Sequence record: KY555144.1
DNA: 64,000 nt
Strand: one strand, 5' to 3'
The notes under the pieces are model-generated. The model made no database searches and was not told where the DNA came from. It was given only the letters and a program-made list of their open reading frames with translations. This document shows positions 9,204 through 62,461 of this stretch, in pieces. Both the position numbers and the translations under genes were made by a program. Positions within the stretch are counted from its first letter, which is position 1; each line of letters opens with the position of its first letter.

Positions 9204-9277
9204 GAAAAGGGCCTCCGGCGTTGTCGTCGAAGGCCCTTCTAGCGAGTCGGTGTCAGGCTGTCAACACATGTCAGCCA
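9204..9277 (-). promoter_or_regulatory. family promoter cassette with SD-occluding hairpin
   Basis: TGGCT-N5-GTG-TTGACA-17-TAGAAG-GGCCTTC-GACGACAAC-GCC-GGAGGCCCTTTT-CATG. Confidence 0.88.
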
Positions 9278-9280
9278 AGA

Positions 9281-9892
9281 TCAGGCGGCGTTCGTCACCA
9301 GGGTTTCCAGGCGATCAAAGCCCAGGTCGAGGCGGCCCCACATCGACGAGGGCGTATGCGGCTTGACCACCTCGGTGAACCGCGCGCGCTCCTTCAGATA
9401 CATGCGGGCCATGGGGATGTTCGGCTGGCCGGTCGCCGGGTCCTTGATCGAGGCCTCGACATTGGCGATCCGGTCGGCGAGCTTGAGGATGCAGGCCTTG
9501 GGGTGCTCGCCCAGCTTGCGATAGATGTCCTCGTTGCGGGCCTTGCGGTTGGGGCCGATGCCCGAGACCGCCCAGACTAGCGCCGCGACGTCCTCGCCGA
9601 ACTTTTCCTTGAGCATCTCCAGCCGCTGCTCGGGCGTCATGTCGAGATGGGTGTCCTCGATCACGTCGTGCAGCTTGGCGGCGGCCGTCCAGGTAAAGCC
9701 CAGGAAGCCGTAGTCATCGAGGATGCGCTCGACCTTCTGGAGATGGTAGAGATAGGGCTGGCCGGCGTACTGCTGGTCCCCGTGAGCGGCGATGGCGAAC
9801 TCCGTCGGGTCTTCCTGGCGCAGCGGCGCGCCCGGCGCCGTCGGGAGGCCGGTCAGGATGGAGGCGAGTTGGTCGAGCGAGGCGTCAGACAT
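9281..9892 (-). CDS. HD-domain hydrolase, small alarmone hydrolase/Mesh1-like
   Basis: AH..Q...G.PY..H, LHDVIEDT, FG..VA.LV, LKLADRIAN motifs; no synthetase domain. Confidence 0.85.
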   Translation of the reverse strand: MSDASLDQLASILTGLPTAPGAPLRQEDPTEFAIAAHGDQQYAGQPYLYHLQKVERILDDYGFLGFTWTAAAKLHDVIEDTHLDMTPEQRLEMLKEKFGEDVAALVWAVSGIGPNRKARNEDIYRKLGEHPKACILKLADRIANVEASIKDPATGQPNIPMARMYLKERARFTEVVKPHTPSSMWGRLDLGFDRLETLVTNAA

Positions 9893-10298
9893 GGGGCTTC
9901 TCGGAGATCGGGGTGAAGACTTCCAGGCCGTCGACGATCTGCATCAGATGCGTCGGCGGGTGGGCGGGATTGTAGCGGATGTAGCCGGCGAGGCCGCCGT
10001 CGATCATCGCCCCGCCCCGCTCCTTGTAGTCGTGCCGGAAGCGCGAGACCAGGAACGAACCGTCGGGCATCTCGATCGCCGAGAACTGGGCCTGTCGGAT
10101 CGAGGCCGCCGAGGTGATGTAGAGCCCGCCGCCCAGCGGATGGGTGAAGAGCCCGAAGTAGTTATCGTGGCCTTTCTCGCGGTCCGGCGTCTCGGTGTAG
10201 AAGACGTGGAACGGCCCCTCACGATCGGGGAGGTCGTAATAGCCGACGTACTTGGCGTTGTAGTGCTTTTCGGCCCCGGAGATGTTGATGCTGCTCAT
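9885..10298 (-). CDS. conserved phage hypothetical protein
   Basis: SRFRHDY...MIDGG motif; ATG 10298 overlaps the HNH stop. Confidence 0.8.
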   Translation of the reverse strand: MSSINISGAEKHYNAKYVGYYDLPDREGPFHVFYTETPDREKGHDNYFGLFTHPLGGGLYITSAASIRQAQFSAIEMPDGSFLVSRFRHDYKERGGAMIDGGLAGYIRYNPAHPPTHLMQIVDGLEVFTPISEKPHV

Positions 10299-10798
10299 GC
10301 GACCCTCAGGAATTCTCCCCAGGCGGGGAGGGCGTGCTTCAGATAGGCGGCGTGCGCCTCGTCCGGCGTCGTGTAGCACCCGAGATAGCGGTACACCCCG
10401 TTGATCGTGACCTGGGCCTGGAACGGCTTCGTCTTGCTCCGGCTCTTGGTCACACCCTTGGGAAGCGCGCCGACGTTCGGGCGGTTCACGAGGTTCTGGG
10501 ACCGCGTCGCCTTCCGGAGGTTCTTGATCCGATTGTTGCGCCGGTTCAAGTCCTTGTGGTCGACGTCGTGATCGGGCATCACCCCGTGATGGATCGCCCA
10601 GGCCACCTTGTGGGCGGCGATTTGAATTCGCCGGCCGCCATAGGAGACCTTCATCACTCGATAGCCGTCCTTGGTCACCGAGCCGCAGCGCTTGCGGGAC
10701 TTGGAGCCCCGCACGGTGATGGCGCCGGTGGCGGGATCGTACTTGTAGCGCGCCCGGAGGAAGTCGACCGGGATCGAAAACTCTGCATCCCCCGACAT
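10295..10798 (-). CDS. HNH homing endonuclease with AP2-like C-terminus
   Basis: AHKVAW...VDHKDLNRRNNRIKNLR..T..QN; FQAQV..NG..RYLG.Y.T..EAH.AY. Confidence 0.9.
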   Translation of the reverse strand: MSGDAEFSIPVDFLRARYKYDPATGAITVRGSKSRKRCGSVTKDGYRVMKVSYGGRRIQIAAHKVAWAIHHGVMPDHDVDHKDLNRRNNRIKNLRKATRSQNLVNRPNVGALPKGVTKSRSKTKPFQAQVTINGVYRYLGCYTTPDEAHAAYLKHALPAWGEFLRVA

Positions 10799-12375: not shown

Positions 12376-13608
12376 CTAGCCCTTCACGCAGAGGACTTGC
12401 TTGAGGGTGTGGACGATGTCCACGAGGTCCTTCTGGGCCTCCATGACCGCGTCGATGTCCTTGTAGGCCATCGGGATTTCGTCGATCACGCCAGCGTCCT
12501 TGCGGCACTCCACGCCCTCGGTGGCCTTGATCTGGTCCTCCAGGGTGAAGGTCGCCTTGGCCTGGGTCCGCGACATCGTCCGGCCCGCGCCGTGCGAGCA
12601 CGAGCAGAACGAGTCCGCATTGCCCTTGCCGCGCACGATGTAGGACTTGGCCCCCATCGAGCCGGGGATGATCCCGAACTGGTCCTTCTGCGCCGACACC
12701 GCGCCCTTGCGGGTCACGAAGACCCACTCGTCGAAGTGGAACTCCTTCTGGACGTAGTTGTGGTGGCAGTTCACCGCTTCCTTGTCCGTCTTGAACGGCG
12801 GCAGGCCCGACGCCCGCATGGCCTCCAGGACCCGGACCATCATCATCTCGCGGTTGATCCGCGCGAAGTCCTGGCCCCAGGCGACGGCTTCCACGTAGTC
12901 GTGGAACTCCGGCTCGCCTTCGCAGAGCCAAGCAAGGTCCTTGTCCAGCGGCTTGCGCCCGTCACGGCGCAGCATCATCTCCTTGGCCTTCTCGATGAAG
13001 ATGCGGCCGATGGTGTTGCCGACGCCGCGCGAGCCCGAGTGGAGCATCACCCAGACGCGCTGATCCTCGTCGAGGCAGACCTCGATGAAGTGGTTGCCGC
13101 CGCCCAGGGTGCCCAGTTGGACCACGCTGTTGGCGTTCTTCAGCGCCGGGTACTTCTCGCAGAGCTTGTCGAACCGCGCCTCCAGGCCCGAATCGACCCA
13201 CTTGCGCAGGATCGAGTTGGGGATGCCGCTGCGCCCGTTCCAGCCGCCCGACGGACCCGGCCCGCCGTGCGGGACGGCGTGCTCGATCAGCGAGCGAAGC
13301 TTGGACAGGCTGTCGGGGAGGTCCGACGCGGTCAGGCTGGTGCGGACCGCCATCATGCCGCAGCCGATGTCGACGCCGACGGCGGCCGGGATGATCGCGC
13401 CCTTGGTCGGGATCACCGAGCCCACGGTCGAGCCGATGCCCATGTGGACATCCGGCATCAGGGCGACATGCGAGTGAATGAAGGGCAGGGCCGCGAGGTT
13501 GTGGGCCTGGACCTGAGCCGGTTGCTCGAAGTTCACGCCGCGAACCCAGGCCTTGATCACGCCGCCATTCCAGCCGTTGATCTCTTCGTAATGGGTCTCG
13601 GCGGACAC
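12376..13608 (-). CDS. rtcB: RtcB RNA ligase
   Basis: MPDVH.G.G..VG, GVDIGCGM, QLGTLGGGNHFIE, HSGSRG, HHNY, RKGA, PGSMG, SCSHGAGR, DE.P.AYKDI. Confidence 0.97.
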   Translation of the reverse strand: MSAETHYEEINGWNGGVIKAWVRGVNFEQPAQVQAHNLAALPFIHSHVALMPDVHMGIGSTVGSVIPTKGAIIPAAVGVDIGCGMMAVRTSLTASDLPDSLSKLRSLIEHAVPHGGPGPSGGWNGRSGIPNSILRKWVDSGLEARFDKLCEKYPALKNANSVVQLGTLGGGNHFIEVCLDEDQRVWVMLHSGSRGVGNTIGRIFIEKAKEMMLRRDGRKPLDKDLAWLCEGEPEFHDYVEAVAWGQDFARINREMMMVRVLEAMRASGLPPFKTDKEAVNCHHNYVQKEFHFDEWVFVTRKGAVSAQKDQFGIIPGSMGAKSYIVRGKGNADSFCSCSHGAGRTMSRTQAKATFTLEDQIKATEGVECRKDAGVIDEIPMAYKDIDAVMEAQKDLVDIVHTLKQVLCVKG

Positions 13609-13674
13609 GGCGGGCTCCTTCTGTGGTGTCGTGATTTACGACTTTTGACCATGCTCCTCGGACGGTGTCAACAC
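13609..13674 (-). promoter_or_regulatory. family promoter cassette (rtcB)
   Basis: GTG-TTGACA (13671-13666), 18 nt, CAAAAG, then ACGACAC and GAAGGAG SD. Confidence 0.65.
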
Positions 13675-15848: not shown

Positions 15849-16135
15849 CAGGTCGCGAGCCCGCGCTGCTTCAAGGCGACGATCTGCTCGATCTCCTTGA
15901 GGATGTGGTCCGACAGGCGGTCGGTCCGTTCCTTGATGCCGGCCGGGACGCCGATCTTGCACTGACCGATCTCGTGCAGGCGGTCGGAGACGGCCTTCAG
16001 GTCGATCAGGGTGTCGCTGATCAGCACCTCGGCGAGGCCCACGGCCTCGGTCTGGATGGCGGCGATCCGCTGGGCGGTGGTCTGCGCCGATTGGCCAGCG
16101 ACGAGGGCCAGGGCGGCGGTGTTCTTCTGGGTCAT
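15848..16135 (-). CDS. hypothetical helical protein
   Basis: First gene after a promoter cassette; SD AAGGAG. Confidence 0.85.
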   Translation of the reverse strand: MTQKNTAALALVAGQSAQTTAQRIAAIQTEAVGLAEVLISDTLIDLKAVSDRLHEIGQCKIGVPAGIKERTDRLSDHILKEIEQIVALKQRGLAT

Positions 16136-16196
16136 GGGGTCTCCTTCGTTGTCGTCGGGCGTGACTTCTAGTTGGGTTCCTGGAGGCTGTCAACAC
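16136..16196 (-). promoter_or_regulatory. family promoter cassette
   Basis: GTG-TTGACA (16193-16188), 17 nt, TAGAAG, 8 nt, GACGACAAC-GAAGGAG. Confidence 0.88.
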
Positions 16197-16458
16197 TTTC
16201 GCTCACCGGCGCGGCGCCGTAGTGCGCGACCAGGACAAGCCGGGCGCCGCAGGCGACCAGCGCGCCGCGCGCGTCGTAGATCAGCCGCCCGGCCTCCTCG
16301 CCGTTCTTGTCCAGGATGATGGCCTCCCTGACGTAGGTCGGCTTGCCGCTCTTGCCCCGCTGGATGCGGATCGGGGGATCATCCGTGCCGCGCTTGGTGT
16401 TGCGATCGATGACCTGTCGGTTGATGTTGAGGACGCAGGTCGTGCGGGTGATCTTCAT
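16168..16458 (-). CDS. conserved phage hypothetical protein
   Basis: NINRQVI..N.K.G..DPPI...ACGARL motif; its stop is the TAG of the downstream -10 box. Confidence 0.8.
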   Translation of the reverse strand: MKITRTTCVLNINRQVIDRNTKRGTDDPPIRIQRGKSGKPTYVREAIILDKNGEEAGRLIYDARGALVACGARLVLVAHYGAAPVSESVDSLQEPN

Positions 16459-16763: not shown

Positions 16764-18181
16764 ATCAGCGCTCCTTGGCTCGGATCGGCCGGCGCGTAGA
16801 CGGCGCGGTTGATGGTGGTCTCCGGCTCGCCCGAGCGCTTGTTGGCGCCGTGACGCTTGATCGTGGCCCGGATGGCGTAGCGCTTGCCGGCCTCGGGGCG
16901 GTTCTTGCCGGTGTGGAAGTTCACCACCGCCGAGCCGTCGTCGCAGCGGATGGCCACGATGCAGGTCGTCTCGCCGAAGTCGTTGGTGTAGAGGGAGGTC
17001 CGCACGACCTCGCCCACGAAATCCACGCGCTGACCCTCGGCGGCGTCGAGGTGCTTGGCGGCCGGGCGCTGGGGAGCGTCGGCCTTCTTGCGGGCGTCCT
17101 CCTCGCGCTCCAGGGCGCGACCGACCGACAGGCCGACAGCGGCGACGATCACACCCATGCGCTTGACCAGGACAAAGTCCTCCTGAGCGAGCACCATCTT
17201 GATGTTCTCGTGGAACGGATTGCCCGGCTTCAGCGAGCGAATGTAGGCGGTGAAGCCCTCGCGGTCGAACTCCGGCTCGAAGCCCTTGTAGGAGTCGATG
17301 ATCTCCTGATTGCGCTTGCGCTCGTAGTCCGACAGACCATAGCCCCGGTTGCCGAACATCAGCAGGCCGACATGCTTGCGCGATTCCTCCTTGCTGTAGC
17401 CGCCGAACCGGCGAGCCACGCGGTAGGAGGTGCGCAGGAGTTCGCCCAGGTCGACGTACTCCTCGCCTCTGCGCCAGCCGCCCGGATCGCCCTTGAAGTT
17501 GTTCAGGTCATCCCAGAACGACAGCATGCGGACCGGGTCGGCGCCCAGGTAGGTCTTCAGGCACGAGGCCCCGATCATCTTGATCCCGTCGGCGGTCTCG
17601 CAGACGAAGGTATGCTTGCGCCGCTGGGCGACGCCGCAGTGGGCGCACTCGCCGGCGTGTACACGCATGGCTTCCACGACGTCGTTGGCGGTCTTGTCGA
17701 CCAGCTTGAGGTAGTGGCCCGTCTTTTCGGCGGCCTCGTAGATGCCCAGCACGCGGCCCTTCTCGCCGACCATCGGCGGGACCGACAGGGTGATCTCGAC
17801 GCGGCGGATCACCATGGCGTCCTCGCTCATATAGGGCGAGGGGAAGTCGACCACCTTGCGCTCCAGGACCGTCAGGGTCTGGCCAGCGTGGGCGGCGCGC
17901 TTTTGCAGCCGTCCCAGCAGGCGCATGAAGCGCTCCTCGACGGCGAACCCCATCATGAAGGTCAGGGTGGCTTGGCCCTCGCGCACGCCTTCCTGGGCGG
18001 CCCACATGGCGGCGCGGTGAGCTTCACGCTCCTTGTCGTCCTCGAAGATCGAGGCACCCTTGGCGGTCACGACCTCGACGCCGTCGACCATCACGCTGGC
18101 CTGATCGGCGACCGTCTGCGGACGCTCGCCGTAGGTTTCCAGCATGTAGTCCTGGTAGCTGCCTTCGAATTCGCCAAACAT
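16760..18181 (-). CDS. putative Zn-binding, OB-fold nucleic-acid-binding protein
   Basis: CAHCG...IGASC Cys cluster; C-terminal QRVDF.GEV...G.T..V..D.G.AVV.F...G..Y.I.ATIK.H OB-like pattern. Confidence 0.6.
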   Translation of the reverse strand: MFGEFEGSYQDYMLETYGERPQTVADQASVMVDGVEVVTAKGASIFEDDKEREAHRAAMWAAQEGVREGQATLTFMMGFAVEERFMRLLGRLQKRAAHAGQTLTVLERKVVDFPSPYMSEDAMVIRRVEITLSVPPMVGEKGRVLGIYEAAEKTGHYLKLVDKTANDVVEAMRVHAGECAHCGVAQRRKHTFVCETADGIKMIGASCLKTYLGADPVRMLSFWDDLNNFKGDPGGWRRGEEYVDLGELLRTSYRVARRFGGYSKEESRKHVGLLMFGNRGYGLSDYERKRNQEIIDSYKGFEPEFDREGFTAYIRSLKPGNPFHENIKMVLAQEDFVLVKRMGVIVAAVGLSVGRALEREEDARKKADAPQRPAAKHLDAAEGQRVDFVGEVVRTSLYTNDFGETTCIVAIRCDDGSAVVNFHTGKNRPEAGKRYAIRATIKRHGANKRSGEPETTINRAVYAPADPSQGALI

Positions 18182-18252
18182 GATCGGCTCCTCTCGCTGT
18201 CGTGAGGGAGCTTGTACGGGCTCACGCCGATGCTGTCAACACTCTAACGCCA
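18182..18252 (-). promoter_or_regulatory. family promoter cassette with SD-occluding hairpin
   Basis: TGGCG-N5-GTG-TTGACA-17-TACAAG; GCTCCCTC-ACGACAGC-GAG-A-GGAGC. Confidence 0.85.
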
Positions 18253-18263
18253 ACAAAGAATCG

Positions 18264-21121: not shown

Positions 21122-21480
21122 TGGTCCGACACCTTCGCCAGTTGCTTTTCCAGTTCGGCGCGCAGTTCAGCGTCGCTCAGGCCCAGGCGCGCCTTCATGA
21201 AGGCTACCGCCTCGGCGGCGGTCTCGAAGGAGCGGGTCTCGGCATCGGTGCTGTCGCGCAGGCCGAGGATTTCGATCACGCCCCAGAAAGTCGCCCAGGC
21301 GGAGGCGATCAAGGCCGCCACCGTGATGGCGAAGCCGAAGTTGAACTGGCGCGCGGCGCTCAGTTCCACCGCCTCGGCCGCCGTCCAGGCTACCGCGACC
21401 ATGCTCACCGAGGCGAGATGGAGCAGGGCGGCTCTGCGGGTGTGGGTCGGGCGGACTTCCAGGGTCATCTTGTCTTGCAC
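21118..21480 (-). CDS. membrane protein
   Basis: GTG after cassette SD GAGGAG; two hydrophobic segments. Confidence 0.75.
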   Translation of the reverse strand: MQDKMTLEVRPTHTRRAALLHLASVSMVAVAWTAAEAVELSAARQFNFGFAITVAALIASAWATFWGVIEILGLRDSTDAETRSFETAAEAVAFMKARLGLSDAELRAELEKQLAKVSDQ

Positions 21481-21553
21481 GAGGGTCTCCTCTGCGGTTG
21501 TCGTCACCCGCCTCTTAGGACAAGGCCGAAGCCTTGTCAACACATTCAAGCCA
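21481..21553 (-). promoter_or_regulatory. family promoter cassette
   Basis: TGGCT-N5-GTG-TTGACA-17-TAAGAG-6-GACGACAAC; spacer forms a GACAAGGC-TTCG-GCCTTGTC hairpin. Confidence 0.88.
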
Positions 21554-22685
21554 GCGTGACGCCGAGCGTCGCGGCCATCTTCTGGAGCGCCGCGCGCTGG
21601 GTCTTGATCTGCTCGTCGAACTTGTCGAAGGCGGTCAGGACGTCGGTCTCCAGCTTGCCGAGCGCTTCCCACTGCTTCTTGAGTTCGGCGCCGGCCAGTT
21701 CCGCCGCCTCGTTGCGTTCCGGACCGTAGACGCGCTCGCGCATCTCGGCGACCCAGGCCCAGGGAAGGCCCAGGTCCTCGGCGACCTTCTTGTCGGTCCA
21801 GGTCCCGGTATAGCGCTGCTGGATCGTGTTGTAGTGGACGTCGAGGGCCTCGATGATCCGGCGGTTCTCGGCCGGTGTCGCCGTGCGCGGCGGCGTGGCG
21901 GAGGTCGACGGGGTGGCGATGGCGATGGCGGCTGCGGACACGGGAGCGATCTCCGGAATAGGGGAAGGAACAGGCGCGTCGGGGGCAAGCTTGCCCTGAC
22001 GGATCAGGCGGGTGCGGGCGGCGTTCTTCTGCCGCTGGGAGCGTTCCTCGGGGGTCATCGTCTCCCAGTAACGGCGGGAGGCCTCGCCTTGCTTGGCGGC
22101 GGTCTCGGCCTTCTTGGCGGCGGCGCGGGCGCGGCGGGTCTCATGACCCTTGGCGGTGGCGGCCGAGCGCTGCTCGGGCGTCATGGAGGCCTGGACGCGC
22201 CTCAGGCGATCGCCATCCCCGCGCCCCGGCTTGGTCTTGAGACCGCTCTTGACCATCGCCGCTTCCACAAGGGCGGCGCCGACGGCGGTTGGGGCGTTGG
22301 CGGGGCTGGGCTTGGCTTCCACGATGGCTTCCTCTGGAATGATTTCGAACTTCGCCAGGGCGTTCGAGACGGTGTAAACGGCCGCGTCGAGTAGGAGACC
22401 GTGCTGGTTCTCGGGCGGCTGGGATGCGGCCTTGGCCAGCCCATGGCAGGCAGGGCAAACGTCCTTGGCGCGCGAGCCTCCGACCGACCAGCCCCGTTTG
22501 CGGAACATCTTGGCGGCGAATTCCGACGGGATGTGGGGTGAGCGGGTGGTGATGGGGATGGCGTCCTCGGCCGGGCATTTGCGGCAGGTGATGACGACAT
22601 GGTTTTGGCGCTTGGACGGATCACCCTTCAGGGATCGCATCTCGACCCGGAACGAGTCGCGTGTCGCGAGTTTGGTGGTGCTCAT
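21546..22685 (-). CDS. Zn-finger, basic low-complexity DNA-binding-like protein
   Basis: CRKC...CPAC, Ala/Lys/Arg-rich centre, C-terminal HTH-like DKKVAEDLGLPWAWVAEMRE and coiled coil. Confidence 0.8.
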   Translation of the reverse strand: MSTTKLATRDSFRVEMRSLKGDPSKRQNHVVITCRKCPAEDAIPITTRSPHIPSEFAAKMFRKRGWSVGGSRAKDVCPACHGLAKAASQPPENQHGLLLDAAVYTVSNALAKFEIIPEEAIVEAKPSPANAPTAVGAALVEAAMVKSGLKTKPGRGDGDRLRRVQASMTPEQRSAATAKGHETRRARAAAKKAETAAKQGEASRRYWETMTPEERSQRQKNAARTRLIRQGKLAPDAPVPSPIPEIAPVSAAAIAIATPSTSATPPRTATPAENRRIIEALDVHYNTIQQRYTGTWTDKKVAEDLGLPWAWVAEMRERVYGPERNEAAELAGAELKKQWEALGKLETDVLTAFDKFDEQIKTQRAALQKMAATLGVTLA

Positions 22686-23265: not shown

Positions 23266-23435
23266 CGCAGTAGTTCTCCGTCGGCGATCCGGATGTCGCT
23301 CAGGGGATAGTCCTGGAAGAAGGCGCGCAGCCGCTGGCGCAGCATCCCCTCGACAGCCTCGGCGTTGTTCAGGGCCTCGGCGAGGTCTTCGAACATCTGG
23401 CGCTCATGGGCGCGTAATGGGCGGGTCTTCGGCAT
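23262..23435 (-). CDS. hypothetical protein (57 aa, not in ORF track)
   Basis: MPKTRPLRAHERQMFEDLAEAL...; follows cassette SD GGAGG; stop overlaps the next ATG. Confidence 0.8.
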   Translation of the reverse strand: MPKTRPLRAHERQMFEDLAEALNNAEAVEGMLRQRLRAFFQDYPLSDIRIADGELLR

Positions 23436-23503
23436 GGGACCTCCTGGTTGTCGTCGTGCGGCTTTTAGCCCCGATAGGTCAGGCTGTCAACACAGTGCAG
23501 CCA
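23436..23503 (-). promoter_or_regulatory. family promoter cassette
   Basis: TGGCT-N5-GTG-TTGACA-17-TAAAAG-6-GACGACAAC-CAGGAGG. Confidence 0.88.
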
Positions 23504-23723
23504 GCCGGGCGATATAGTCCCGCATCCGCTCGCTCGACGCATAGCGCCACGTCCAGGGGACCTGTTCGGGGCGCGCGCCGTTGAACTGGCAAAGCCATAG
23601 GAAGGCCTCCTCCGAGTGAGGCCAGTTCTCGGCGTCGGCCGAGAAACCGGTCATGCGGAAGCACGCCGCGACCTCGGCCGGCGTCAGGTTCGGGTCGCGC
23701 ACGGCCTTGAGCTTGACCTTCAC
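23487..23723 (-). CDS. hypothetical protein (start may be CTG 23816)
   Basis: Frame is open upstream to 23816; stop is the TGA of the next -35 box. Confidence 0.7.
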   Translation of the reverse strand: MKVKLKAVRDPNLTPAEVAACFRMTGFSADAENWPHSEEAFLWLCQFNGARPEQVPWTWRYASSERMRDYIARLAALC

Positions 23724-24311: not shown

Positions 24312-25329
24312 CGGCGACCTCCTCGGCCTCTTCCTCGCTCGGGGCGATCGTCGAGCCCGAATATTCCTGGAGGTGGTCGACTGCCTTCTGGGCCAGTGAC
24401 GCGGCGGTGAAGATGAAGCGCTTGTCGCCCTTCAGGACCTTCAGCCAGGAGGCGACATAGGAGGCGTGATCCTCACGGACTTCCGGGGTCAGCCCGAGAA
24501 TGGCGCAGAGGAAGGCCGAACCCAGTTCGGCGACCAGTTCCTCGGCGGCGTAGGCCTCGTCACCGAAGCGCTTGCCGAACTCGCGGTTCAGGCGGTCCTC
24601 GCGACCGGTCCAGTGGACGAACTCGTGGCCGAGGGTGGCGTAGTAGCTCTCCTCGTCGCGGAAGGCGTCGAACTGGGGCATCTGGATGAAGTCCAGGTGC
24701 GGCGAGAAGAAAGCGCGGTGACCGCCGTGACGCACCTCGGCGCCCGTGGCGGCGAAGAACTTCTCGACCGCCGCGTTGCGCTCCAGGACCCGCTTGGCTT
24801 CCTCGGCGGGCGTCGCCGGCGCCGGGGCGGGCTTCTGGTAGAAGCGCTCGGGCAGGCCGTCGATCTGCTCGACGTTGAACACCAGATAGGACTTCAGGAA
24901 CGGGATCATCCGCTCGACGTCCTTGCCGTTGGAGTCCTTCTCGGTCTTCTTGAACTTCGAGGCGTAGACGATCAGTTCGGACTTCTCGCCCTTGCGGACC
25001 TGACCACCCAGGTCCCTAGCTTGGTTGTAGGTCATCCAGGTCGGGTTGGAGTAGCCACGCTCCTGGGCGGCGGCCCACAGGAGGACCACGTTGATCCCGG
25101 TGTAGCGCTGGCCGGTCACCCGGCGGGGATAGATCGCCATGCCGGCCGACGCGCCGCCGGGAGCCGACCACGGCTTCAACCAGGGACGCACGCCAGCGTC
25201 GAGGGCGGCGATGATCTTGTCGGTGATCTTCTGATAGAGGTCGACCTTGACGGTTTCGGTCGAGGCCTTGCCGGTCTCCTTGGTGGAGCGCTTGGCGGGC
25301 TTCTTCTTGGCGGCGGTGGTCTTGGTCAT
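24298..25329 (-). CDS. ardC: ArdC-like ssDNA-binding antirestriction protein
   Basis: YQKITDKII..L..G..PW.KPW, Y.GIN..LLW, WMTYNQA..LGGQVRKGEK, VFNVEQIDG, YYATL.HE..HWTG...RL.R, YA.EELVAELGSAFL, ASYVASWL..LK.D. Confidence 0.92.
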   Translation of the reverse strand: MTKTTAAKKKPAKRSTKETGKASTETVKVDLYQKITDKIIAALDAGVRPWLKPWSAPGGASAGMAIYPRRVTGQRYTGINVVLLWAAAQERGYSNPTWMTYNQARDLGGQVRKGEKSELIVYASKFKKTEKDSNGKDVERMIPFLKSYLVFNVEQIDGLPERFYQKPAPAPATPAEEAKRVLERNAAVEKFFAATGAEVRHGGHRAFFSPHLDFIQMPQFDAFRDEESYYATLGHEFVHWTGREDRLNREFGKRFGDEAYAAEELVAELGSAFLCAILGLTPEVREDHASYVASWLKVLKGDKRFIFTAASLAQKAVDHLQEYSGSTIAPSEEEAEEVADAAA

Positions 25330-25388
25330 CAGGGCCTCCTCGTTGTCGTCGGAGGCCCTTCTATGCTGGCGTGAGAGTGTTGTCAACA
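25330..25388 (-). promoter_or_regulatory. family promoter cassette (near-identical subfamily)
   Basis: TTGACAACACTCTCACGCCAGCATAGAAGGGCCTCC-GACGACAACGA-GGAGGCCC-TGATG. Confidence 0.9.
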
Positions 25389-25392
25389 GGCG

Positions 25393-26337: not shown

Positions 26338-26459
26338 GACTTGAGGCTCTGGCAGGCGAACGTGACCTCGTCCATATCGTCGAGGGTGTACGACCGGTCG
26401 GTGATCGCATGGGCGTAGTCGAAGGTCGCCGCCTTGATCTCGTCGCGCGTGAAGGTCAC
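26334..26459 (-). CDS. small hypothetical protein (41 aa, not in ORF track)
   Basis: GTG after cassette SD GGGGAG; VTFTRDEIKAATFDYAHAITDRSYTLDDMDEVTFACQSLKS. Confidence 0.68.
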   Translation of the reverse strand: MTFTRDEIKAATFDYAHAITDRSYTLDDMDEVTFACQSLKS

Positions 26460-27190
26460 GGCTCTCCCCCTGGTGTCGTTTCAGCGCTTCTAGCCCTGCC
26501 AAGCAGAGCCGTCAACACATCAGCGCCACGCCAGACCCAGGATAGGCTCAGAACGAGGTCGCGGTCCTCATAGGCGGCGCTGCGCCCGGTGATCACCTTG
26601 ATCGCCGAGAGCGGGCCAAACCGCCAGAAGACGACCGTGCGCGAGTCGTTACGGCCCGGCAGATGCTCCAGCAGCACGCGGCGCTTGATCGCCAAATGTC
26701 GCTGCTCCCTGTGGAGGACGAGCGCGACCTTGCGCGTCGGGTCAGACCCGAACCACCGGCGCCAGTAGCCCGGATTGTCGATGTTCTCGAACAGCCGGCC
26801 GATCCGCTTGCTGACGGGGCGAAGCCCAGGCTCGCGCCGGCGCACGCTCAGCGGTGGGAAGGTGCAAGGCGGCCACTCCGGAAGCAGGCGCAGGCGCAGC
26901 CTCCGGAATTCCCACGCCGGCATGGCGTTGTCCTTGGTGTTGTTGCACGCCACGCAGGCCGCCGCCAGATTGCTCTCGTGGTTCGATCCGCCCTCGGCCC
27001 TAGCCTCCAGGTGCTCGATCGTCACCTCGTCGGGCTCCAGCTTGCCACCGCCCCGGCCGATCCGCCGGCGATAGGCCATCTGCCCTGTGCAATAGGTGCA
27101 GAGGCCACCCGCCTCCAGGAAGAGGCGGTGGCGGCGGTTCGGCGCGGCGGGCGGGAGCGGGTCCTGGACCAGCACCTCAGATGAGGACAT
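26456..27190 (-). CDS. HNH endonuclease
   Basis: CTYC...TIEHL.AR.EGGSN..SNL..AC..CNN.K. Confidence 0.85.
   Translation of the reverse strand: MSSSEVLVQDPLPPAAPNRRHRLFLEAGGLCTYCTGQMAYRRRIGRGGGKLEPDEVTIEHLEARAEGGSNHESNLAAACVACNNTKDNAMPAWEFRRLRLRLLPEWPPCTFPPLSVRRREPGLRPVSKRIGRLFENIDNPGYWRRWFGSDPTRKVALVLHREQRHLAIKRRVLLEHLPGRNDSRTVVFWRFGPLSAIKVITGRSAAYEDRDLVLSLSWVWRGADVLTALLGRARSAETTPGGEP
26460..26528 (-). promoter_or_regulatory. family promoter cassette (inside the 3' end of the HNH gene)
   Basis: TGGCG-N5-GTG-TTGACG-17-TAGAAG-7-ACGACAC. Confidence 0.8.
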
Positions 27191-29090: not shown

Positions 29091-29674
29091 GCCTCGATCT
29101 CCTCGAACCGTCCATCCATGAATTCGGCCTCGCGTCGACCCCACATCTGGCCCTCGGCGTCGAGGTAGGTCAGCAGGGTCTCGTCATCGAGCACCGGGGT
29201 CTCGCACTGGATGCGGATCGTCCCGACCAGGGCGTAGTCGCCGCCGCGCTTCTTGTGGCGGAAGCGGCGCATACCGCGCGGAAGCTCCGCCAGGAAGGCC
29301 TTCAGGGCGTCCGCCACCTTGGCCACGCCATGCGGGAAGTGCGAGCCCGGCCCGCGCACCCATTGATAGATTGTCGCCAGGGCGAAGCGCCCGGCGGCGA
29401 TCTCGCCCGTGGGGTCCTTGCGGATCATGTCCGGCGCGTAGTCTTCGAGGTAGTTCGTCCCGAGGATCGCCATGCAGCGGGCCTCCTCCACCGAGGTCGG
29501 CAGGCGCAGGTGATCGCGATCCAGGCGGTCGGCCTCGGCGAGCGACTTAATCACCCCGACCAGGATCGCCGCCTTCTCGGCGTGCCATTGCCGGCCGCCG
29601 GGCTCAGGGGCGCGCTCGGCGTGGTAGAGGTGGTAGTCCAGTATCTCGTGGACGTCTTCGCTCTGTCGGGACAT
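29087..29674 (-). CDS. hypothetical protein with C-terminal DUF1653-like domain
   Basis: FRHKKRGGDY...LLTY....G..W.R...EF.DGRF. Confidence 0.75.
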   Translation of the reverse strand: MSRQSEDVHEILDYHLYHAERAPEPGGRQWHAEKAAILVGVIKSLAEADRLDRDHLRLPTSVEEARCMAILGTNYLEDYAPDMIRKDPTGEIAAGRFALATIYQWVRGPGSHFPHGVAKVADALKAFLAELPRGMRRFRHKKRGGDYALVGTIRIQCETPVLDDETLLTYLDAEGQMWGRREAEFMDGRFEEIEA

Positions 29675-29735
29675 AGGGTTCCTTCCGTTGTCGTCACCCG
29701 CGACACTAGATGGTCGCGGGTGCGCGTGTCAACAC
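29675..29735 (-). promoter_or_regulatory. family promoter cassette
   Basis: GTG-TTGACA-18-TAGTGT-7-GACGACAAC-GGAAGGA. Confidence 0.82.
29695..29722. repeat. perfect 10-bp inverted repeat enclosing the -10 box
   Basis: CACCCGCGAC-N8-GTCGCGGGTG. Confidence 0.9.
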
Positions 29736-29736
29736 T

Positions 29737-39219: not shown

Positions 39220-39253
39220 GCACCAATGTCGCTGGCTTTCGAGTGTTGACAAG
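39205..39253. repeat. 16-bp direct repeat, 33-bp period
   Basis: TTCGAGTGTTGACAAG at 39205-39220 and 39238-39253. Confidence 0.95.
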
Positions 39254-41227: not shown

Positions 41228-41482
41228 ATGCTGACCAAGGACGAGATCACCTTCGCGGGCCTGATCAAGGCCATGGAGGACGCCCGACGCACCGCCAAGG
41301 CGGCGGGCGATCTCGTCAGCACGGCCGAGATCGCCCGCTGGTTCAAGGAACACGCGCCGATCATCCGGGAGGTCCGCGACAAGGCCGAGGCTGACGAATT
41401 CGACGCTGGCGCGAGAGTGTTGACAACCTCTGAGGAAGGGGCTAAAGACACCCTCGACGACAGCGAAAGGAGCCTGCCTTGA
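41228..41482 (+). CDS. hypothetical protein
   Basis: 84-aa ORF whose last ~25 codons are a promoter cassette. Confidence 0.72.
   Translation: MLTKDEITFAGLIKAMEDARRTAKAAGDLVSTAEIARWFKEHAPIIREVRDKAEADEFDAGARVLTTSEEGAKDTLDDSERSLP
41407..41478 (+). promoter_or_regulatory. family promoter cassette
   Basis: TGGCG-N5-GTG-TTGACA-17-TAAAGA-7-GACGACAGC-GAAAGGAG-TTG. Confidence 0.85.
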
Positions 41483-44532: not shown

Positions 44533-44540
44533 GTCTTTCC

Positions 44541-44611
44541 TGGCGTGAAAGTGTTGACAGCCTGAAGGGACTCCTCTACACCCACGCTCGACGACAACGA
44601 GAGGAGTTCCC
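44541..44611 (+). promoter_or_regulatory. family promoter cassette
   Basis: TGGCG-N5-GTG-TTGACA-17-TACACC-7-GACGACAAC-GAGAGGAG. Confidence 0.85.
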
Positions 44612-46381
44612 ATGGCCGAGACCATGACCCTGAGTTTCCGGATCGAAGGCGCCGCCCTGGTGGAGCGGGCGCGCGATCGTGTCATCGAAGGTAACTGGGA
44701 GCACGGCCTGCGCATCCTGGTCGAGGGCCTGCACGGCATGTCCTACGAACTCGCGATCGACATCCTGCTCGGCAAGCACACCCTGGGCGGCTGGTCCTCG
44801 GACCCCGAAGGCGTCTATCTCACCGACCAGGACCCGGAGGACGAGACTTTCAAGCGTTACAAGAAAACCCTCGACTACCAGTTCGCCGGCGTCTTCAAGC
44901 TGGAGGATGGCCGGATCATGCGTCCCTACGCCGTGGTCGACAGCTTCTCCAAGATCGACTTCGACTCCAGGGTCCGCTTCCTGCGGCTGGCCCAGGGCTC
45001 GGACCCGGTGTTCTCGCGCCCCAAGCGCTATCACGACACCCGCGCCGAGATCAACGGCGAGGAGATCGACTGGGCCTATCGCGCCCTGCACTACGCCGAC
45101 GAGCCGACCCAGGACATCGTCCGTCTGGTCCGTATGGAGGGCTTCCATCCCACGATCCGAGCGGCGGTCCTGTTCAAGGAAGTCCGCGACTATCCCAAGC
45201 TCCTACTTCCGAAGGTCGAGACCGACGCCCAGAAGGCCGTCGATGTGGCGATCAAGGCCCAGCGCGGCCTCTCCAAGCGCGGGCACGTCTACGAGTACGG
45301 CGCTGGTCAGGACTTCGACAAGGAGCACTACAAGACCACCATGGGGATCGATCAGGTCCCCACCGCCTGGACCGTGCGCAACCCGAAATACGTCGAGCCG
45401 AGCGTCGAGATCGCCCTGGCCGAGGCCAACAAGGTCTCCGCCGTCAAGGCGATCGAAGCCGCTGGCGGTTCGATGGATCATGCCGGCGCCATGAACCGGA
45501 TGGTCAAGGACGAGATGGACGGTGGCATGGACATCAGCACGGCCGTCGCCATGACCCAGGCCAAGATGGCGCTGCTGGGCGGCATGGCCGAGGACCCCGA
45601 GCAGCGCCTGCGGGCGATCAACGACGCCTACGCCGCCAAGTACGAGAAGGCCGAGGGCCGCAGCGTCGAGGAGTACCGCAAGGCCATCATCGCCCAAGCT
45701 GGCGATGACTTCTTCGATCTCGCGTACACGGATGTGGACGGCAAGGAGGTCGTCCTGAAGGTCCCGACCGCGCCGTTCGAGCAATGGGCTCTGTGGCGCA
45801 CCGCCGGCGCCCACCTCGCCAAGCCCTGGAAGCGGGTGACCTACACCGGCTTCAAGACGTTCGGCGATGATCCCTATCACACCGACTGGGTGCTGGGCGC
45901 GGGGCTCAACCCCGAGGACTGGCCGATCATCGAGGCCGACAACCCGCCGCTCCACAAGGCCGCCTGGGAAAAGCGCTTCCGGCTGGCCGAGGAGAAGCTG
46001 GGCGGCAACATGCGCGTCCTGCTCGGCAAGGGTTACGTGACCGGCAAGATCGTGATGCTCAAGCCGGGCGAGGCCCTGTCTCCGGGCGAGATCGGCGTGA
46101 TCCGCAACGCCGGCCCTGACTATGTCCAGGCCGCCCAGAGCGCCATCGAGCACAACTCCGCCTTGATCTGCGAGAACGGCGGCAGCGTCGCCCACCTCGT
46201 GGTCGAGTATCTGGACAAGCCCCTGCGTCTGGCGCGGATCGAGAACGCCCGCAAGATTTTCAAGGACGGCATGACCGTCTACCTCGACTTCGACAAGTCC
46301 ACGCGCGAGATCGGCAAGGGAAGCCTTGGCCCGAGCCCGGCGGACCTTGGACTCGACACGCAATGGGAGATTTTCGAATGA
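44612..46381 (+). CDS. protein with C-terminal PEP-utilising-enzyme phosphohistidine (swivel) domain
   Basis: G.VTGKI...GEI.VI....PDY...A....ALICENGGSVAHL.V........ENA.KIFKDGMTV.LD, matching the GG.T.H swivel-domain pattern; N-terminal ~465 aa unrecognised. Confidence 0.7.
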   Translation: MAETMTLSFRIEGAALVERARDRVIEGNWEHGLRILVEGLHGMSYELAIDILLGKHTLGGWSSDPEGVYLTDQDPEDETFKRYKKTLDYQFAGVFKLEDGRIMRPYAVVDSFSKIDFDSRVRFLRLAQGSDPVFSRPKRYHDTRAEINGEEIDWAYRALHYADEPTQDIVRLVRMEGFHPTIRAAVLFKEVRDYPKLLLPKVETDAQKAVDVAIKAQRGLSKRGHVYEYGAGQDFDKEHYKTTMGIDQVPTAWTVRNPKYVEPSVEIALAEANKVSAVKAIEAAGGSMDHAGAMNRMVKDEMDGGMDISTAVAMTQAKMALLGGMAEDPEQRLRAINDAYAAKYEKAEGRSVEEYRKAIIAQAGDDFFDLAYTDVDGKEVVLKVPTAPFEQWALWRTAGAHLAKPWKRVTYTGFKTFGDDPYHTDWVLGAGLNPEDWPIIEADNPPLHKAAWEKRFRLAEEKLGGNMRVLLGKGYVTGKIVMLKPGEALSPGEIGVIRNAGPDYVQAAQSAIEHNSALICENGGSVAHLVVEYLDKPLRLARIENARKIFKDGMTVYLDFDKSTREIGKGSLGPSPADLGLDTQWEIFE

Positions 46382-48338: not shown

Positions 48339-48397
48339 CGTTGACAACACTCTCGCGCCAACATAGAAGGGTCCTCGACGACAACGAGGAGGCTTCG
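48339..48397 (+). promoter_or_regulatory. family promoter cassette (near-identical subfamily)
   Basis: TTGACAACACTCTCGCGCCAACATAGAAGGGTCCTC-GACGACAAC-GAGGAGGCTTCG-ATG. Confidence 0.9.
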
Positions 48398-48781
48398 ATG
48401 AAGCTCGCGACCCAAGACCGCACCGACCCGCGCCTGAACGCGCGCTACCGTCTCGCCAAGGCGGTGTTCTACTATGGCGGCCCGCACGAGTACCCGATCC
48501 ACCTGAACGACTGGTGGAACGAGGTGACGCCGGCCGACGTCGAGGACCGCATCTCCGAACTCTGCCGCGAACTGTCCAAGCTGTCGGGCCAGACCCTGGC
48601 GCCGGCGACCTTCTACGAACGGATGAAGCTGGGCTTCGTCGACCTCCCGGAAGTGAAGGACGAGGACTTCGCCGCCCTGTCGGAGACGACCCGCAACAAC
48701 CTGCTCGCCATGCAGGACCGCTTCTCGGTCCACGGGAGCGGCTTCATGCTCTACTGGAACATCGTCAAAGAGGAGGCCTGA
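48398..48781 (+). CDS. hypothetical protein
   Basis: First gene after a cassette. Confidence 0.82.
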   Translation: MKLATQDRTDPRLNARYRLAKAVFYYGGPHEYPIHLNDWWNEVTPADVEDRISELCRELSKLSGQTLAPATFYERMKLGFVDLPEVKDEDFAALSETTRNNLLAMQDRFSVHGSGFMLYWNIVKEEA

Positions 48782-49840: not shown

Positions 49841-49843
49841 TCC

Positions 49844-49911
49844 TGGCGTTCTTGTGTTGACAAGGCCGGCGGCGCTGGCCTAGAACGTCGTGGACGACAA
49901 CAGGAGGGACC
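49844..49911 (+). promoter_or_regulatory. family promoter cassette
   Basis: TGGCG-N5-GTG-TTGACA-18-TAGAAC-6-GACGACAAC-AGGGAGG. Confidence 0.87.
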
Positions 49912-50268
49912 ATGCCGCTCTACGACTTTCCGACCGGACCGACCACGATGGAGGACATCGAGGCGTTCGTCGCCGGCGCCCAGGCGGTGGTGACCGCCCA
50001 ACTGGCCAAGGCCTTTCCCGGCGTGTCCGCGCCGGTCCTGGAGATCGCGCCGGTTCACCCGAGCAGCCAGTTCGCCAAGATCGTCGCGGTCGACGCCAGT
50101 CAGCGCTCGGCCTGGGCGTTCGTCCGGCTGGAGAACGGTCTGATCTACAAGCCCTCGTCGTGGAAGGTGCCGGCCAAGCATGCGCGCGGCACGATCCACA
50201 CCGCCGCGCACGGCGCCGAGTACGTCGACTGGACCGGCCCGCGCTACGTCAAGGACCTGCGTCGATGA
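49912..50268 (+). CDS. conserved phage hypothetical protein
   Basis: S..AFV...G.IYKP.SWK.PAKHARG.I motif. Confidence 0.85.
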   Translation: MPLYDFPTGPTTMEDIEAFVAGAQAVVTAQLAKAFPGVSAPVLEIAPVHPSSQFAKIVAVDASQRSAWAFVRLENGLIYKPSSWKVPAKHARGTIHTAAHGAEYVDWTGPRYVKDLRR

Positions 50269-57179: not shown

Positions 57180-57186
57180 ATTTTGT

Positions 57187-57256
57187 TGGCGCGAGAACGT
57201 TGACAGCCTCGGCGTGGTGTCATAAAAGCCTCCTCGACGACAACGAGGAGGCCCCC
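57187..57256 (+). promoter_or_regulatory. family promoter cassette with perfect SD-occluding hairpin
   Basis: TGGCG-N5-ACG-TTGACA-17-TAAAAG; GCCTCCTC-GACGACAAC-GAGGAGGC. Confidence 0.9.
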
Positions 57257-57676
57257 ATGGCTTACGCAATTCCGGACCTGAGCACCTACACGTTCCACGA
57301 CCCCAAGGTCGAACGGTTCGCCAAGGCGATGATCTCGACGATCGAGACCGCCCAGACCATGCTCACGGCCTTCGCCAACGATCTCGCCGACAATCCTCTT
57401 CAGGCGTTCGAGCATAGCTACGGCGCCAAGATGGCCGCCGCCCACAGGGACGTCGCCAAGGGGCTGCTCAACGAGGTTCTCGACGCGCTGCTGCATGGTC
57501 AGGACAAGACCTGGGCCTACATCGGCCAGGACCTGCGCGAGCGGCTGATGTATCGCGTGATCTACGCGGCCTCGAACCCGCCGCGCTCGACCAACGCCGA
57601 GAGCAACGACATGGCCCGCTTCGTCCTGCGCGCCGAGGCCGACATGCTCGACCGCATGACCAAGAGCCGCTTCTGA
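57257..57676 (+). CDS. hypothetical helical protein
   Basis: First gene after a cassette. Confidence 0.85.
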   Translation: MAYAIPDLSTYTFHDPKVERFAKAMISTIETAQTMLTAFANDLADNPLQAFEHSYGAKMAAAHRDVAKGLLNEVLDALLHGQDKTWAYIGQDLRERLMYRVIYAASNPPRSTNAESNDMARFVLRAEADMLDRMTKSRF

Positions 57677-58370: not shown

Positions 58371-58588
58371 CGTCGCAGACCCAGAGAACCCTCATCCTGT
58401 CCGGCGTGGGCTTCTTCATCGGCTTCATGCTGGTGTTTGGCTTCATGAGCGTCTCGCAGGCCTCCTACAACCAAGGCTATCGAGACGCCAAGACCGACAC
58501 GCGTCGGGACGAGCCGGCGTGCTTTACCTCCCAGCGCTGCTACCTGGGCCAGGACGCCAACGGGCGGTGGTTCATCGAGCCGAAATAG
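58367..58588 (+). CDS. small membrane-anchored protein
   Basis: SD GAGGAGG; TM segment then YNQGYRDA. Confidence 0.75.
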   Translation: MTSQTQRTLILSGVGFFIGFMLVFGFMSVSQASYNQGYRDAKTDTRRDEPACFTSQRCYLGQDANGRWFIEPK

Positions 58589-58589
58589 T

Positions 58590-58657
58590 TGGCGTTTAAG
58601 TGTTGCCAAAGCCGAGGCACTCGGCTAGAACACGCCCGACGACAACGAGGAGGCCCC
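58590..58657 (+). promoter_or_regulatory. family promoter cassette (variant -35)
   Basis: TGGCG-N5-GTG-TTGCCA-17-TAGAAC-6-GACGACAAC-GAGGAGG. Confidence 0.85.
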
Positions 58658-58864
58658 ATGCCACACTTGAGCCAGCAGCCCTTCACCTTCGACTTCACCA
58701 GCGACGCCCTGCGCGCGGCGCTCGAAATCGAAAAGGGCGCCACCGAATCCTACCGCTACGAGACGATCTTCGTCTTCAACACCGAGCGCGAGATCATCGG
58801 GACCCAGGTCCGCGTCATGGACGAGGAGGGCTTTTTCGAGGCCTACGTGGCGGGGGAAGCCTGA
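58658..58864 (+). CDS. small acidic hypothetical protein
   Basis: First gene after a cassette. Confidence 0.8.
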   Translation: MPHLSQQPFTFDFTSDALRAALEIEKGATESYRYETIFVFNTEREIIGTQVRVMDEEGFFEAYVAGEA

Positions 58865-61932: not shown

Positions 61933-61951
61933 CGGAAGGACCTGAAAGACC

Positions 61952-62374
61952 ATGAGCACCGACCTCTTCGAGATCGCCGCGCGCGAGAAGTTCCGCTTCG
62001 AAAGCCCCAAGGGCCTCCTGGGCGTGGAAGAACTGTTCGACCTGCCGCTGACCAGCACCGTCGCCGGCAAGGCCAACCTGAACGATATCGCCGTCGACCT
62101 GTTCAAGCAGATCAAGGACCTCGACAACATCTCGTTCGTCACGCCCAAGAAGGTCGACCCCTCGATCGGCCAACGCCTGGACATCGTCAAGCGGGTGATC
62201 GAGATCAAGCAGGCCGAGAACGCGGCCAAGCTGAAGACCGCCCAGGACAAGGAGACCCTGCGCATCCTGGACGAGGCGATCGCCGCCAAGAAGTCCGAGA
62301 AGATCGCCGGCACCTCGCTGGAAGACCTCGAAGCCCAGCGCGCGGCCTTGCTCTCGGGCGGCGCCTCCGCCTAA
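61952..62374 (+). CDS. conserved phage hypothetical coiled-coil protein
   Basis: LFE.A.R.KFRF.S.KG.L.VE.LFDLPL...L.D.A; SD AAGGA. Confidence 0.85.
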   Translation: MSTDLFEIAAREKFRFESPKGLLGVEELFDLPLTSTVAGKANLNDIAVDLFKQIKDLDNISFVTPKKVDPSIGQRLDIVKRVIEIKQAENAAKLKTAQDKETLRILDEAIAAKKSEKIAGTSLEDLEAQRAALLSGGASA

Positions 62375-62400
62375 GCCTTCGGGCGGGCTGACATAGGCGC

Positions 62401-62461
62401 TTGACAACACTCTCGCGCCAACATAGAAGGGCCTCCGACGACAACGCCGGAGGCCCTTTTC
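62401..62461 (+). promoter_or_regulatory. family promoter cassette (near-identical subfamily; hairpin + U4)
   Basis: TTGACAACACTCTCGCGCCAACATAG-AAGGGCCTCC-GACGACAACGCC-GGAGGCCCTT-TTCATG. Confidence 0.9.

Follow-up and report, generated by a model that had tools for sequence, protein, structure and literature searches.

A conserved leader tag in predicted early operons of Caulobacter phage Ccr5 and a candidate phage small RNA that may pair with it

Introduction

Why should a lytic phage place the same nine nucleotides at the head of so many of its operons? This question is raised by Caulobacter phage Ccr5, a phiCbK-like giant siphovirus (Dolichocephalovirinae, Shapirovirus; G+C 66%), in which the 9-mer GACGACAAC, called here the tag, recurs between promoter and Shine-Dalgarno (SD) sequence. 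The window analysed is a stretch of 64,000 nucleotides (nt) of record KY555144.1, corresponding to genome positions 124001-188000 (100% identity); coordinates given below are those of the window unless the genome is named. Its genes point leftward below ~36 kb and rightward above ~39 kb and are chiefly small hypothetical genes, accompanied by nicotinamide adenine dinucleotide (NAD) salvage genes, RtcB, an XRE regulator (tgrL homologue) and a GcrA homologue. The initial annotation had considered the tag as the first ~9 nt of each mRNA and, among other roles, as a self tag read in trans by an RNA-binding protein. Our analysis lends support to a reading in trans, the reader found being, however, a candidate phage small RNA (sRNA) and not a protein. 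We give an even chance to the reading in which the tag forms the 5′ end of early leaders and serves there as seed-match for this sRNA, which would control the early regulon.

Early-gene shut-off of large lytic phages is known in mechanistic detail for few models, and sRNA control within lytic phages is barely explored. In phiCbK, the tgrL operon is early by RNA sequencing and 41% of genes peak by 15 min (McLaughlin et al. 2023, PMC10688885); promoters and sRNAs were not treated in that work. No such promoter or tag is described by Gill et al. 2012 (PMC3556154), and literature searches directed at a phiCbK sRNA, or at any sRNA through which a lytic phage acts on its own early genes, returned nothing equivalent. 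In the literature searched, both the tag and the sRNA are undescribed. The operons considered here other than that of tgrL would be early judging by their promoter class.

The tag and its promoter cassette

The exact tag occurs 14 times in the window against 0.60 expected, the highest count among 100 shuffles being 3. All copies lie on the coding strand, seven on the minus strand (<36 kb) and seven on the plus strand (>39 kb). Every one of the 14 copies listed by the initial annotation was found in its place, and so were the gap of 6-8 nt that it gave between the −10 hexamer and each of them and its five variant copies (CACGACAGC, AACGACACC, GACACAACGACAG, GACGACAGC and CACGACACC). Over the 218.7 kb of the Ccr5 genome, 18 of the 19 exact tags are within promoter cassettes, spanning 114-193 kb. 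The sole copy outside cassettes is an antisense one, ~72 kb beyond the window at genome 52326-52334, to which we return below.

The cassette has a regular order: yTGGCk, ~9 nt, (GTG)TTGACA, N17-18, a TAGAAG-like −10, N6-8, the 9-mer, N0-4, GGAGG, N5-8 and the start codon, the conserved promoter being TGGC / GTGTTGACA-N17-TAGAAG. Across the 21 cassettes scored genome-wide, the promoters are of sigma-70 type (Caulobacter sigma-73), with a −35 conserved at 95-100% per position, a spacer of 17 (n=17) or 18 nt (n=4) and an invariant TA in the −10. They are missed by a generic promoter scan because it requires T as the last −10 base. The gap from −10 to tag is 7 nt in 13 cassettes, 6 nt in six and 8 nt in two; relative to the start expected from the tag, −1 is usually a pyrimidine and +1 usually G/A. 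Thus the geometry, with canonical −35/−10 spacing and the tag 7±1 nt past the −10, agrees with the view that the tag forms the first ~9 nt of the mRNA, the start site being a predicted one. With such starts, about 22 Ccr5 operons would begin with a tagged short leader of ~20-25 nt. The NAD capping speculated on in the initial annotation concerned copies initiated with A; judging by the sequence, G as well as A could be the first base.

The distance from tag to SD is looser than that from tag to −10, 0-4 nt with one exception of 35 nt. The claim that the tag always stands directly before the SD holds inside the window but not beyond it, since at the cassette at genome 189037 a 30-nt hairpin separates the two. 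Summed per position over the 21 cassettes, the information content is ~16 bits for the 9-mer, ~12 bits for the −35 and ~9 bits for the −10. Internal genes without promoter never carry the tag ahead of their SD, and four cassette-type promoters lack it. One of these is inside the window (59815-59905 (+), −35 at 59815), where a TGGC...GTGTTGACG-N17-TAAGAA promoter is followed by a long leader ahead of gp275; it is predicted to pair only weakly with the sRNA (−11.6 kcal/mol) and so provides a natural internal control.

When IMG/VR was scanned with a promoter plus tag pattern, multiple matches were obtained in phiCbK-like genomes only. Single matches in unrelated contigs, mainly ATGACGACAAC coding starts, were near chance level for this loose pattern and were discarded. 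Even should the sRNA idea fail, the tag is among the most strongly conserved transcribed promoter-proximal elements in host-polymerase-dependent phage promoter families.

Conservation of the tag between genera

CcrRogue belongs to a different genus from Ccr5 and is ~80% identical to it; the region compared was chosen without reference to the motif and contains 22 exact tags. In 15 orthologous cassette pairs, identity reaches 99% in the tag as in the −35, decreases to 89% in the −10 and 81% in the discriminator, and is only 65% in the spacer and 64% upstream. At one orthologous site the promoter body has been swapped, a subfamily with the spacer ACACTCTC replacing the TGGC type in Rogue, with tag and SD kept. 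Within Ccr5, the segments 9201-9245 and 62420-62464 carry an identical 40-nt module from −10 to ATG (…GGGCC(T)TC(C)GACGACAACGCCGGAGGCCCTTTTCATG) joined to different upstream modules. The cassettes are considered modular and recombining because of this swap and of the module shared by the tags at 9220 and 62437. These comparisons indicate that promoter modules move and that the tag is under purifying selection, which holds it constant despite cassette recombination.

A candidate small RNA gene carrying the complement of the tag

The antisense copy is situated in a non-coding gap between the transfer RNA (tRNA) cluster and the gp082 / PhoH module, where genome 52326-52334 reads GTTGTCGTC on the plus strand. 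It lies 50 nt downstream of a cassette-type promoter (genome 52247-52275), itself without tag, and is directly followed by a hairpin annotated as rho-independent terminator in phiCbK, Karma and Swift. Promoter, stem-loop, linker and terminator compose an unannotated small RNA gene (Ccr5 KY555144 52247-52380, L004:2247-2380) with a predicted sRNA of ~96 nt (genome ~52283-52378). The predicted fold (−60.6 kcal/mol, z = −5.5) consists of a 5′ stem-loop, a 10-nt single-stranded linker GUUGUCGUCA, a terminator of 16 base pairs (bp) and a U-rich tail, and the anti-tag has a predicted unpaired probability of 0.8-1.0. The linker, 5′-CGUUGUCGUCA-3′, is the exact complement of (U)GACGACAAC(G), and the CUUCU next to the anti-tag can pair with the GGAGG SD.

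This locus is 78-86% identical in Ccr5, phiCbK, Rogue, BL10 and BL57, with the block CTG-CGTTGTCGTCAG-AACGGCCCG invariant in all, and the 5′ hairpin displays compensatory substitutions (GGACC/GGTCC, GGGGCC/GGCCCC, GGGCC/GGCCC). A coding gene is excluded because indels between lineages break all reading frames; a small open reading frame was considered and rejected, the mechanically called ones, one of which starts within the −35, being all broken in this way. Searched at the gathering threshold, Rfam gave no match in the window and only tRNAs at the sRNA loci, and at E<=1 nothing covered the sRNA. Complementarity to 18 leaders is perfect over 9-10 nt, to which G·U-compatible variants are added. 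The predicted leader-sRNA duplexes of Ccr5 span tag and SD, with a mean of −26.0 kcal/mol vs −14.2±3.2 kcal/mol at 120 other SD sites. By its sequence, the candidate is an independent non-coding unit with a conserved structure, an accessible seed and above-chance complementarity near ribosome-binding sites.

Another non-coding stretch of ~330-430 nt, ending in a T-run, extends from the last tRNA to the sRNA promoter (Ccr5 genome 51912-52246, L004:1912-2246; Bajun gap L137:2454-2885). It may be another structured RNA; its phiCbK and Rogue copies gave no Rfam match.

Tag and seed in related lineages

Syntenic counterparts of the sRNA gene were found in Rogue, BL10, BL57, Colossus, PW, Kikimora, Bajun and Kabachok. 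In CcrColossus and CcrPW, the cassette reads TTGAC(R), N10, GTTTCTT-TACAAG, N6-7, and then mostly UGACGAUCA, at times GACGAAAC or GACGAACAAC. A GACGA core is common to the phiCbK- and Colossus-type tags and lies at equal distance from the −10. The syntenic promoter-terminator unit of Colossus, 98% identical in PW, includes the accessible linker CCUCC-UGAUCGUCA, in which an anti-SD precedes a perfect complement to the Colossus-type tag. Past the GACGA:UCGUC core, phiCbK/Rogue leaders form 4.5-4.9 bp with their own sRNA and Colossus/PW leaders 1.7-2.0 bp with theirs, vs 0-1 bp with the others in both cases. The comparison of phiCbK/Rogue with Colossus/PW thus shows tag and seed changing together.

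The Brevundimonas phages Kikimora, Bajun and Kabachok possess syntenic sRNA-like genes, all with anti-SD, N0-8, RUCGUC, RR just 5′ of a strong terminator, and their early leaders are heterogeneous. In Kikimora, a single canonical cassette (GACGAUAC) matches the sRNA seed, over 7-8 nt, and the comparison of tag and seed there covers only two leaders. The Bajun sRNA matches core and SD block only, and no second anti-tag locus was present within the 58 kb searched. Full-length complementarity between tag and seed is observed in two of the five lineages, both with homogenised tags; in the other lineages, pairing would be bipartite, involving core and SD.

Hairpins around the tag

The bases between −10 and tag are enriched in CCTC(C), the complement of the SD (−8.7 kcal/mol observed vs −5.7±0.5 kcal/mol shuffled), and in ~7/21 cassettes a strong hairpin can be drawn whose loop is the tag. 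The advantage of cognate over non-cognate arms is slight (p 0.03-0.08). Because the start site is placed at the tag, the 5′ arm would exist only in read-through RNA. We rejected this hairpin as the explanation of the tag, as it concerns a subset only and cassettes devoid of it still keep the tag; it is retained as a side feature. It recalls the T4 lysozyme (e) and soc genes, where the promoter resides inside an SD-sequestering hairpin: in the same ~7/21 cassettes, bases from −10 to +1 (CCTCC...) pair with the SD. The difference is that here only some cassettes have the hairpin and that it leaves the tag unexplained.

At one Rogue cassette (JX100814 144701 (-)), the tag is replaced by an SD-sequestering hairpin, CUCCAUCA-CCUGC-UGAUGGAG, where the Ccr5 counterpart has CACGACAGC; therefore, tag and hairpin can substitute for one another.

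Discussion

The location, accessibility and conservation of the antisense copy suggest the following scheme. Host sigma-70-type RNA polymerase would transcribe the tagged operons from strong modular promoter cassettes, with the tag's G or A as first nucleotide. The sRNA linker would then pair with the tag and the adjoining CUUCU with the SD, so that the duplex would cover the 5′ end and the ribosome-binding region of each tagged mRNA. A coordinated translation block and/or triggered decay across the regulon could result, most plausibly as a timed shut-off of early genes as the stable sRNA accumulates, and the GACGA core at +1 may additionally serve initiation. In its widest form, the proposal is that a lytic jumbo phage uses a mobile promoter cassette to mark all its early operons with one 5′ RNA tag, that a single sRNA seed reads tag and SD as a regulon-wide post-transcriptional switch, and that tag and seed co-evolve between genera. 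We hold this wider proposal tentatively, at slightly below an even chance.

Several observations weigh against the sRNA reading. Targeting by an sRNA does not by itself account for the fixed distance to the −10 or for the universal GACGA core. About 0.7 chance copies of a given 9-mer are expected per strand per genome; because one chance copy is expected, the case rests on location, accessibility, conservation and the match in Colossus. Simple terminator and promoter scans fail to call the signals of the sRNA, and its CUUCU segment in Ccr5 is buried in its own 5′ stem. The covarying, lineage-specific part is short, 3-4 nt per lineage. In contradiction to covariation, Bajun leaders suit a phiCbK-type seed (3.2 bp) better than their own sRNA (1.6 bp). 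The leader expected in Kikimora from a blind prediction, GACGAUAGAUAA, was absent from the 41 kb searched, the match between the Kabachok sRNA and its leaders is limited to the core and SD context, and no sRNA was found in the syntenic 8.6-kb locus searched in CcrBL9.

The main rival dispenses with any trans reader. The tag would be promoter-intrinsic, a start-site or initial transcribed sequence acting on host RNA polymerase at the DNA level, which would fix the start, speed promoter escape and yield a U-free unstructured leader, its complementarity to the sRNA being incidental or secondary. Such a role is a live rival because all lineages examined keep the GACGA core equally far from the −10, even where the sRNA matches the core alone. 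It would also account for the tight 6-8 nt gap, for the pyrimidine at −1 and the G/A at +1 in most cassettes, and for the discriminator CCTCCTC, which is also present at the Rogue sRNA promoter with no SD downstream. Moreover, near-consensus TTGACA-N17 promoters are of the escape-limited type, escape being limiting at near-consensus T5 N25-type promoters. We nevertheless consider this role unlikely, for ~16 bits over nine positions far exceed the known demand of RNA polymerase on the initial transcribed region, tagless cassette-type promoters exist, and positions outside the core differ by lineage and, in two lineages, change together with the sRNA seed. It also leaves the conserved accessible antisense copy unexplained. 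Nor does a protein reader account for the complementary sRNA. A phage or host protein could bind the tag as RNA, to protect, enhance or repress, or as a duplex-DNA operator over +1 for early shut-off, the XRE regulator, winged helix-turn-helix proteins and a T5 A1-like protein being candidates. A run of nine invariant, non-palindromic positions anchored at +1 is the usual signature of a site for a sequence-specific binder, several DNA-binding proteins are encoded in the same region, and phiCbK early transcripts fall after 15 min (PMC10688885). But none of the candidate proteins could be tied to the motif. XRE dimers usually recognise dyads, a symmetry that the tag does not have, and for TgrL, chromatin immunoprecipitation sequencing lacked phage DNA and its motif is absent from the paper's text (PMC10688885). 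We regard a protein reader as rather improbable.

Two further explanations appear far weaker. The tag could act as a site of sigma-dependent promoter-proximal pausing or, as the initial annotation had also suggested, as a loading site for an antiterminator permitting read-through of long operons. Its promoter-proximal position on the non-template strand would suit this, as would the few terminators seen directly upstream of cassettes and the few reported overall by that annotation. GACAAC of the tag may be likened to what we take to be the Caulobacter −10 consensus, TANAWC, with the T at −12 missing; we give little weight to this resemblance, and as little to a possible complementarity of the tag to 16S rRNA. 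Antitermination received no specific support: a boxA/boxB-like arrangement is lacking, and neither a Q- nor an N-like factor was identified. Only a third of the cassettes have a strong hairpin, its 5′ arm lying upstream of the predicted +1, and there is little need for antitermination because promoters recur every 1.5-5 kb. We regard the pausing or antitermination role as very improbable, and the same slight credence goes to hitch-hiking of a functionless 9-mer by duplication or gene conversion of a mobile promoter cassette. The modular recombining cassettes (near-identical ACACTCTC copies, the module of 9220 and 62437, the swap at an orthologous promoter) are what hitch-hiking predicts. However, the tag still shows 99% identity where its flanks drop to 64-65%, it is invariant among cassettes with unrelated spacers, and it is kept across two genera.

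Were the sRNA to pair with the tag as proposed, the system would resemble the Hfq-type sRNA regulons (RyhB, RybB, Spot 42). Both have an own promoter, a 5′ stem-loop, a short conserved single-stranded seed and a Rho-independent terminator with U-rich tail, and in both many unlinked mRNAs are targeted at or beside the SD, by predicted pairing in the present case. They differ in that regulator and ~22 candidate targets all belong here to one virulent phage, and in that the diverse imperfect sites of the former contrast with an identical tag at the extreme 5′ end, made by a repeated promoter cassette. The P1/P7 c4 RNA and the P4 CI RNA are likewise small phage RNAs acting in trans on repeated complementary leader sites. 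The pairing of P1 c4 extends over the ribosome-binding region, and the tags and seeds of P1 and P7 have changed in concert. These RNAs, however, serve the immunity of temperate elements; they derive by processing from the target operon itself and have two sites per transcript, while Ccr5 has a stand-alone sRNA gene in a lytic jumbo phage, with ~20 unlinked operons as candidate targets. A functional analogy exists with the T4 RegB endoribonuclease, which selectively inactivates early mRNAs through a shared feature of their initiation region (GGAG in the SD). RegB is a protein nuclease recognising the SD itself, whereas the Ccr5 candidate is an RNA whose discriminator would be a dedicated tag upstream of the SD.

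On the promoter side, the T4-type PeSL cassettes are also repeated early promoter modules, of ~60-100 bp, between genes of a hyperplastic early region, with copies that recombine and shuffle. They join a terminator-like stem-loop to a promoter, without invariant transcribed tag or matching antisense RNA; no consistent upstream stem-loop was found at the Ccr5 cassettes, though their promoter modules repeat and swap. The T5 early promoters, strong host-polymerase promoters of a lytic phage, also share a similarity that extends past +1, where it affects late initiation steps. This downstream similarity is loose and A/T-rich, unlike the nine practically invariant positions of the Ccr5 tag.

If the pairing is real, phiCbK-like phages would offer a clean and genetically tractable case, with a model host that is non-pathogenic, in which a whole temporal class is set by a 9-nt RNA tag and one sRNA, and in which one RNA could switch the whole early gene set. 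The natural tag and seed variants of the sister genera could act as ready-made compensatory controls. The cassette provides a compact, strong and portable expression module for Caulobacter, with promoter, defined leader and strong SD, and combined with the sRNA the tag could make an orthogonal switch.

Individual cassettes and neighbouring features

The cassettes of the window are given below with, in brackets, the positions of tag, −35 and start codon in this order. On the minus strand, the exact tag is found at 9201..9280 (9220-9228, 9259-9264, 9203 of gp162c; strong anti-SD/SD hairpin and T-run), 16133..16210 (16148-16156, 16188-16193, 16135), 21478..21556 (21497-21505, 21535-21540, 21480), 23433..23506 (23447-23455, 23485-23490, 23435), 25327..25390 (25342-25350, 25381-25386, 25329; ACACTCTC spacer subfamily without TGGC, 9-bp anti-SD/SD hairpin), 29672..29740 (29687-29695, 29727-29732, 29674) and 31184..31260 (31199-31207, 31239-31244, 31186). 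Variants on this strand are carried by 18179..18255 (CACGACAGC 18196-18204, 18234-18239, 18181), whose A8G change retains a G·U pair to the sRNA seed, by 26457..26531 (AACGACACC 26472-26480, TTGACG 26510-26515, 26459) and by 35507..35585 (GACACAACGACAG 35521-35533, 35564-35569, 35509), which heads the operon with the XRE/tgrL homologue. The cassette at 13606..13671, ahead of RtcB (start 13608), is a weak variant, with CACGACACC at 13625-13633, a poor −10 TCAAAA and a 9-nt gap.

On the plus strand, exact tags belong to 39230..39307 (39282-39290, 39246-39251, 39305; a second TTGACA upstream), 44538..44614 (44590-44598, 44554-44559, 44612), 48341..48400 (48377-48385, 48341-48346, 48398; ACACTCTC subfamily), 49841..49914 (49893-49901, 49857-49862, 49912; 18-nt spacer), 57184..57259 (57236-57244, 57200-57205, 57257), 58587..58660 (58638-58646, TTGCCA 58603-58608, 58658) and 62401..62464 (62437-62445, 62401-62406, 62462). 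The last is of the ACACTCTC subfamily and has the −10-to-ATG module of the 9220 cassette. That at 57184 forms a perfect 8-bp anti-SD/SD hairpin, and its Rogue orthologue has another promoter body with the same tag. A variant, GACGACAGC, is present at 41404..41481 (41456-41464, 41420-41425, TTG start 41479), of which the Rogue orthologue carries the exact tag.

The yTGGCk element stands at ~−48, ~13 nt upstream of the −35, in most cassettes (window ~9279, 18254, 21555, 23505, 31259, 39232, 41406, 44540, 49843, 57186 and 58589) and in the sRNA promoter, and may be an activator or UP-like site. A sigma-54 −24 box was rejected, as the distance to TTG is 14 and not 12 nt and GA replaces GC. The element is absent from the ACACTCTC subfamily, whose near-identical promoters, TTGACA-ACACTCTC(G/A)CGCCA(A/G)CA-TAGAAGGG, occupy four loci in both arms (25352-25386, 48341-48375, 62401-62435 and genome 189001). 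The module shared by 9201-9245 and 62420-62464 forms a 9-12-bp GC-rich hairpin followed by UUUU, which could be a terminator or attenuator of read-through RNA overlapping the promoter.

At the start of the rightward arm, beside the divergence point, two TTGACA hexamers with 28 nt between them (39210-39251 (+)) may represent tandem promoters. Among the operons with G+C-rich promoter discriminators, a hallmark of stringently controlled promoters, is found gp163c (9281-9892 (-)), a (p)ppGpp synthetase/hydrolase-like gene; phage ppGpp metabolism might conceivably be linked to how active the cassettes are. Finally, a second promoter class, absent from the window, has a CcrM-type GANTC site (GTGAATC) abutting a −35 TTGAC. 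It was seen at Ccr5 genome 71133(+), 93332(-), 115455(+), 202946(+) and ~52417(+), at Rogue 118018, at BL9 L135:2881 and at Bajun L137:3070, and may be controlled by the phage GcrA homologue and methylation, perhaps as a promoter class of middle genes.

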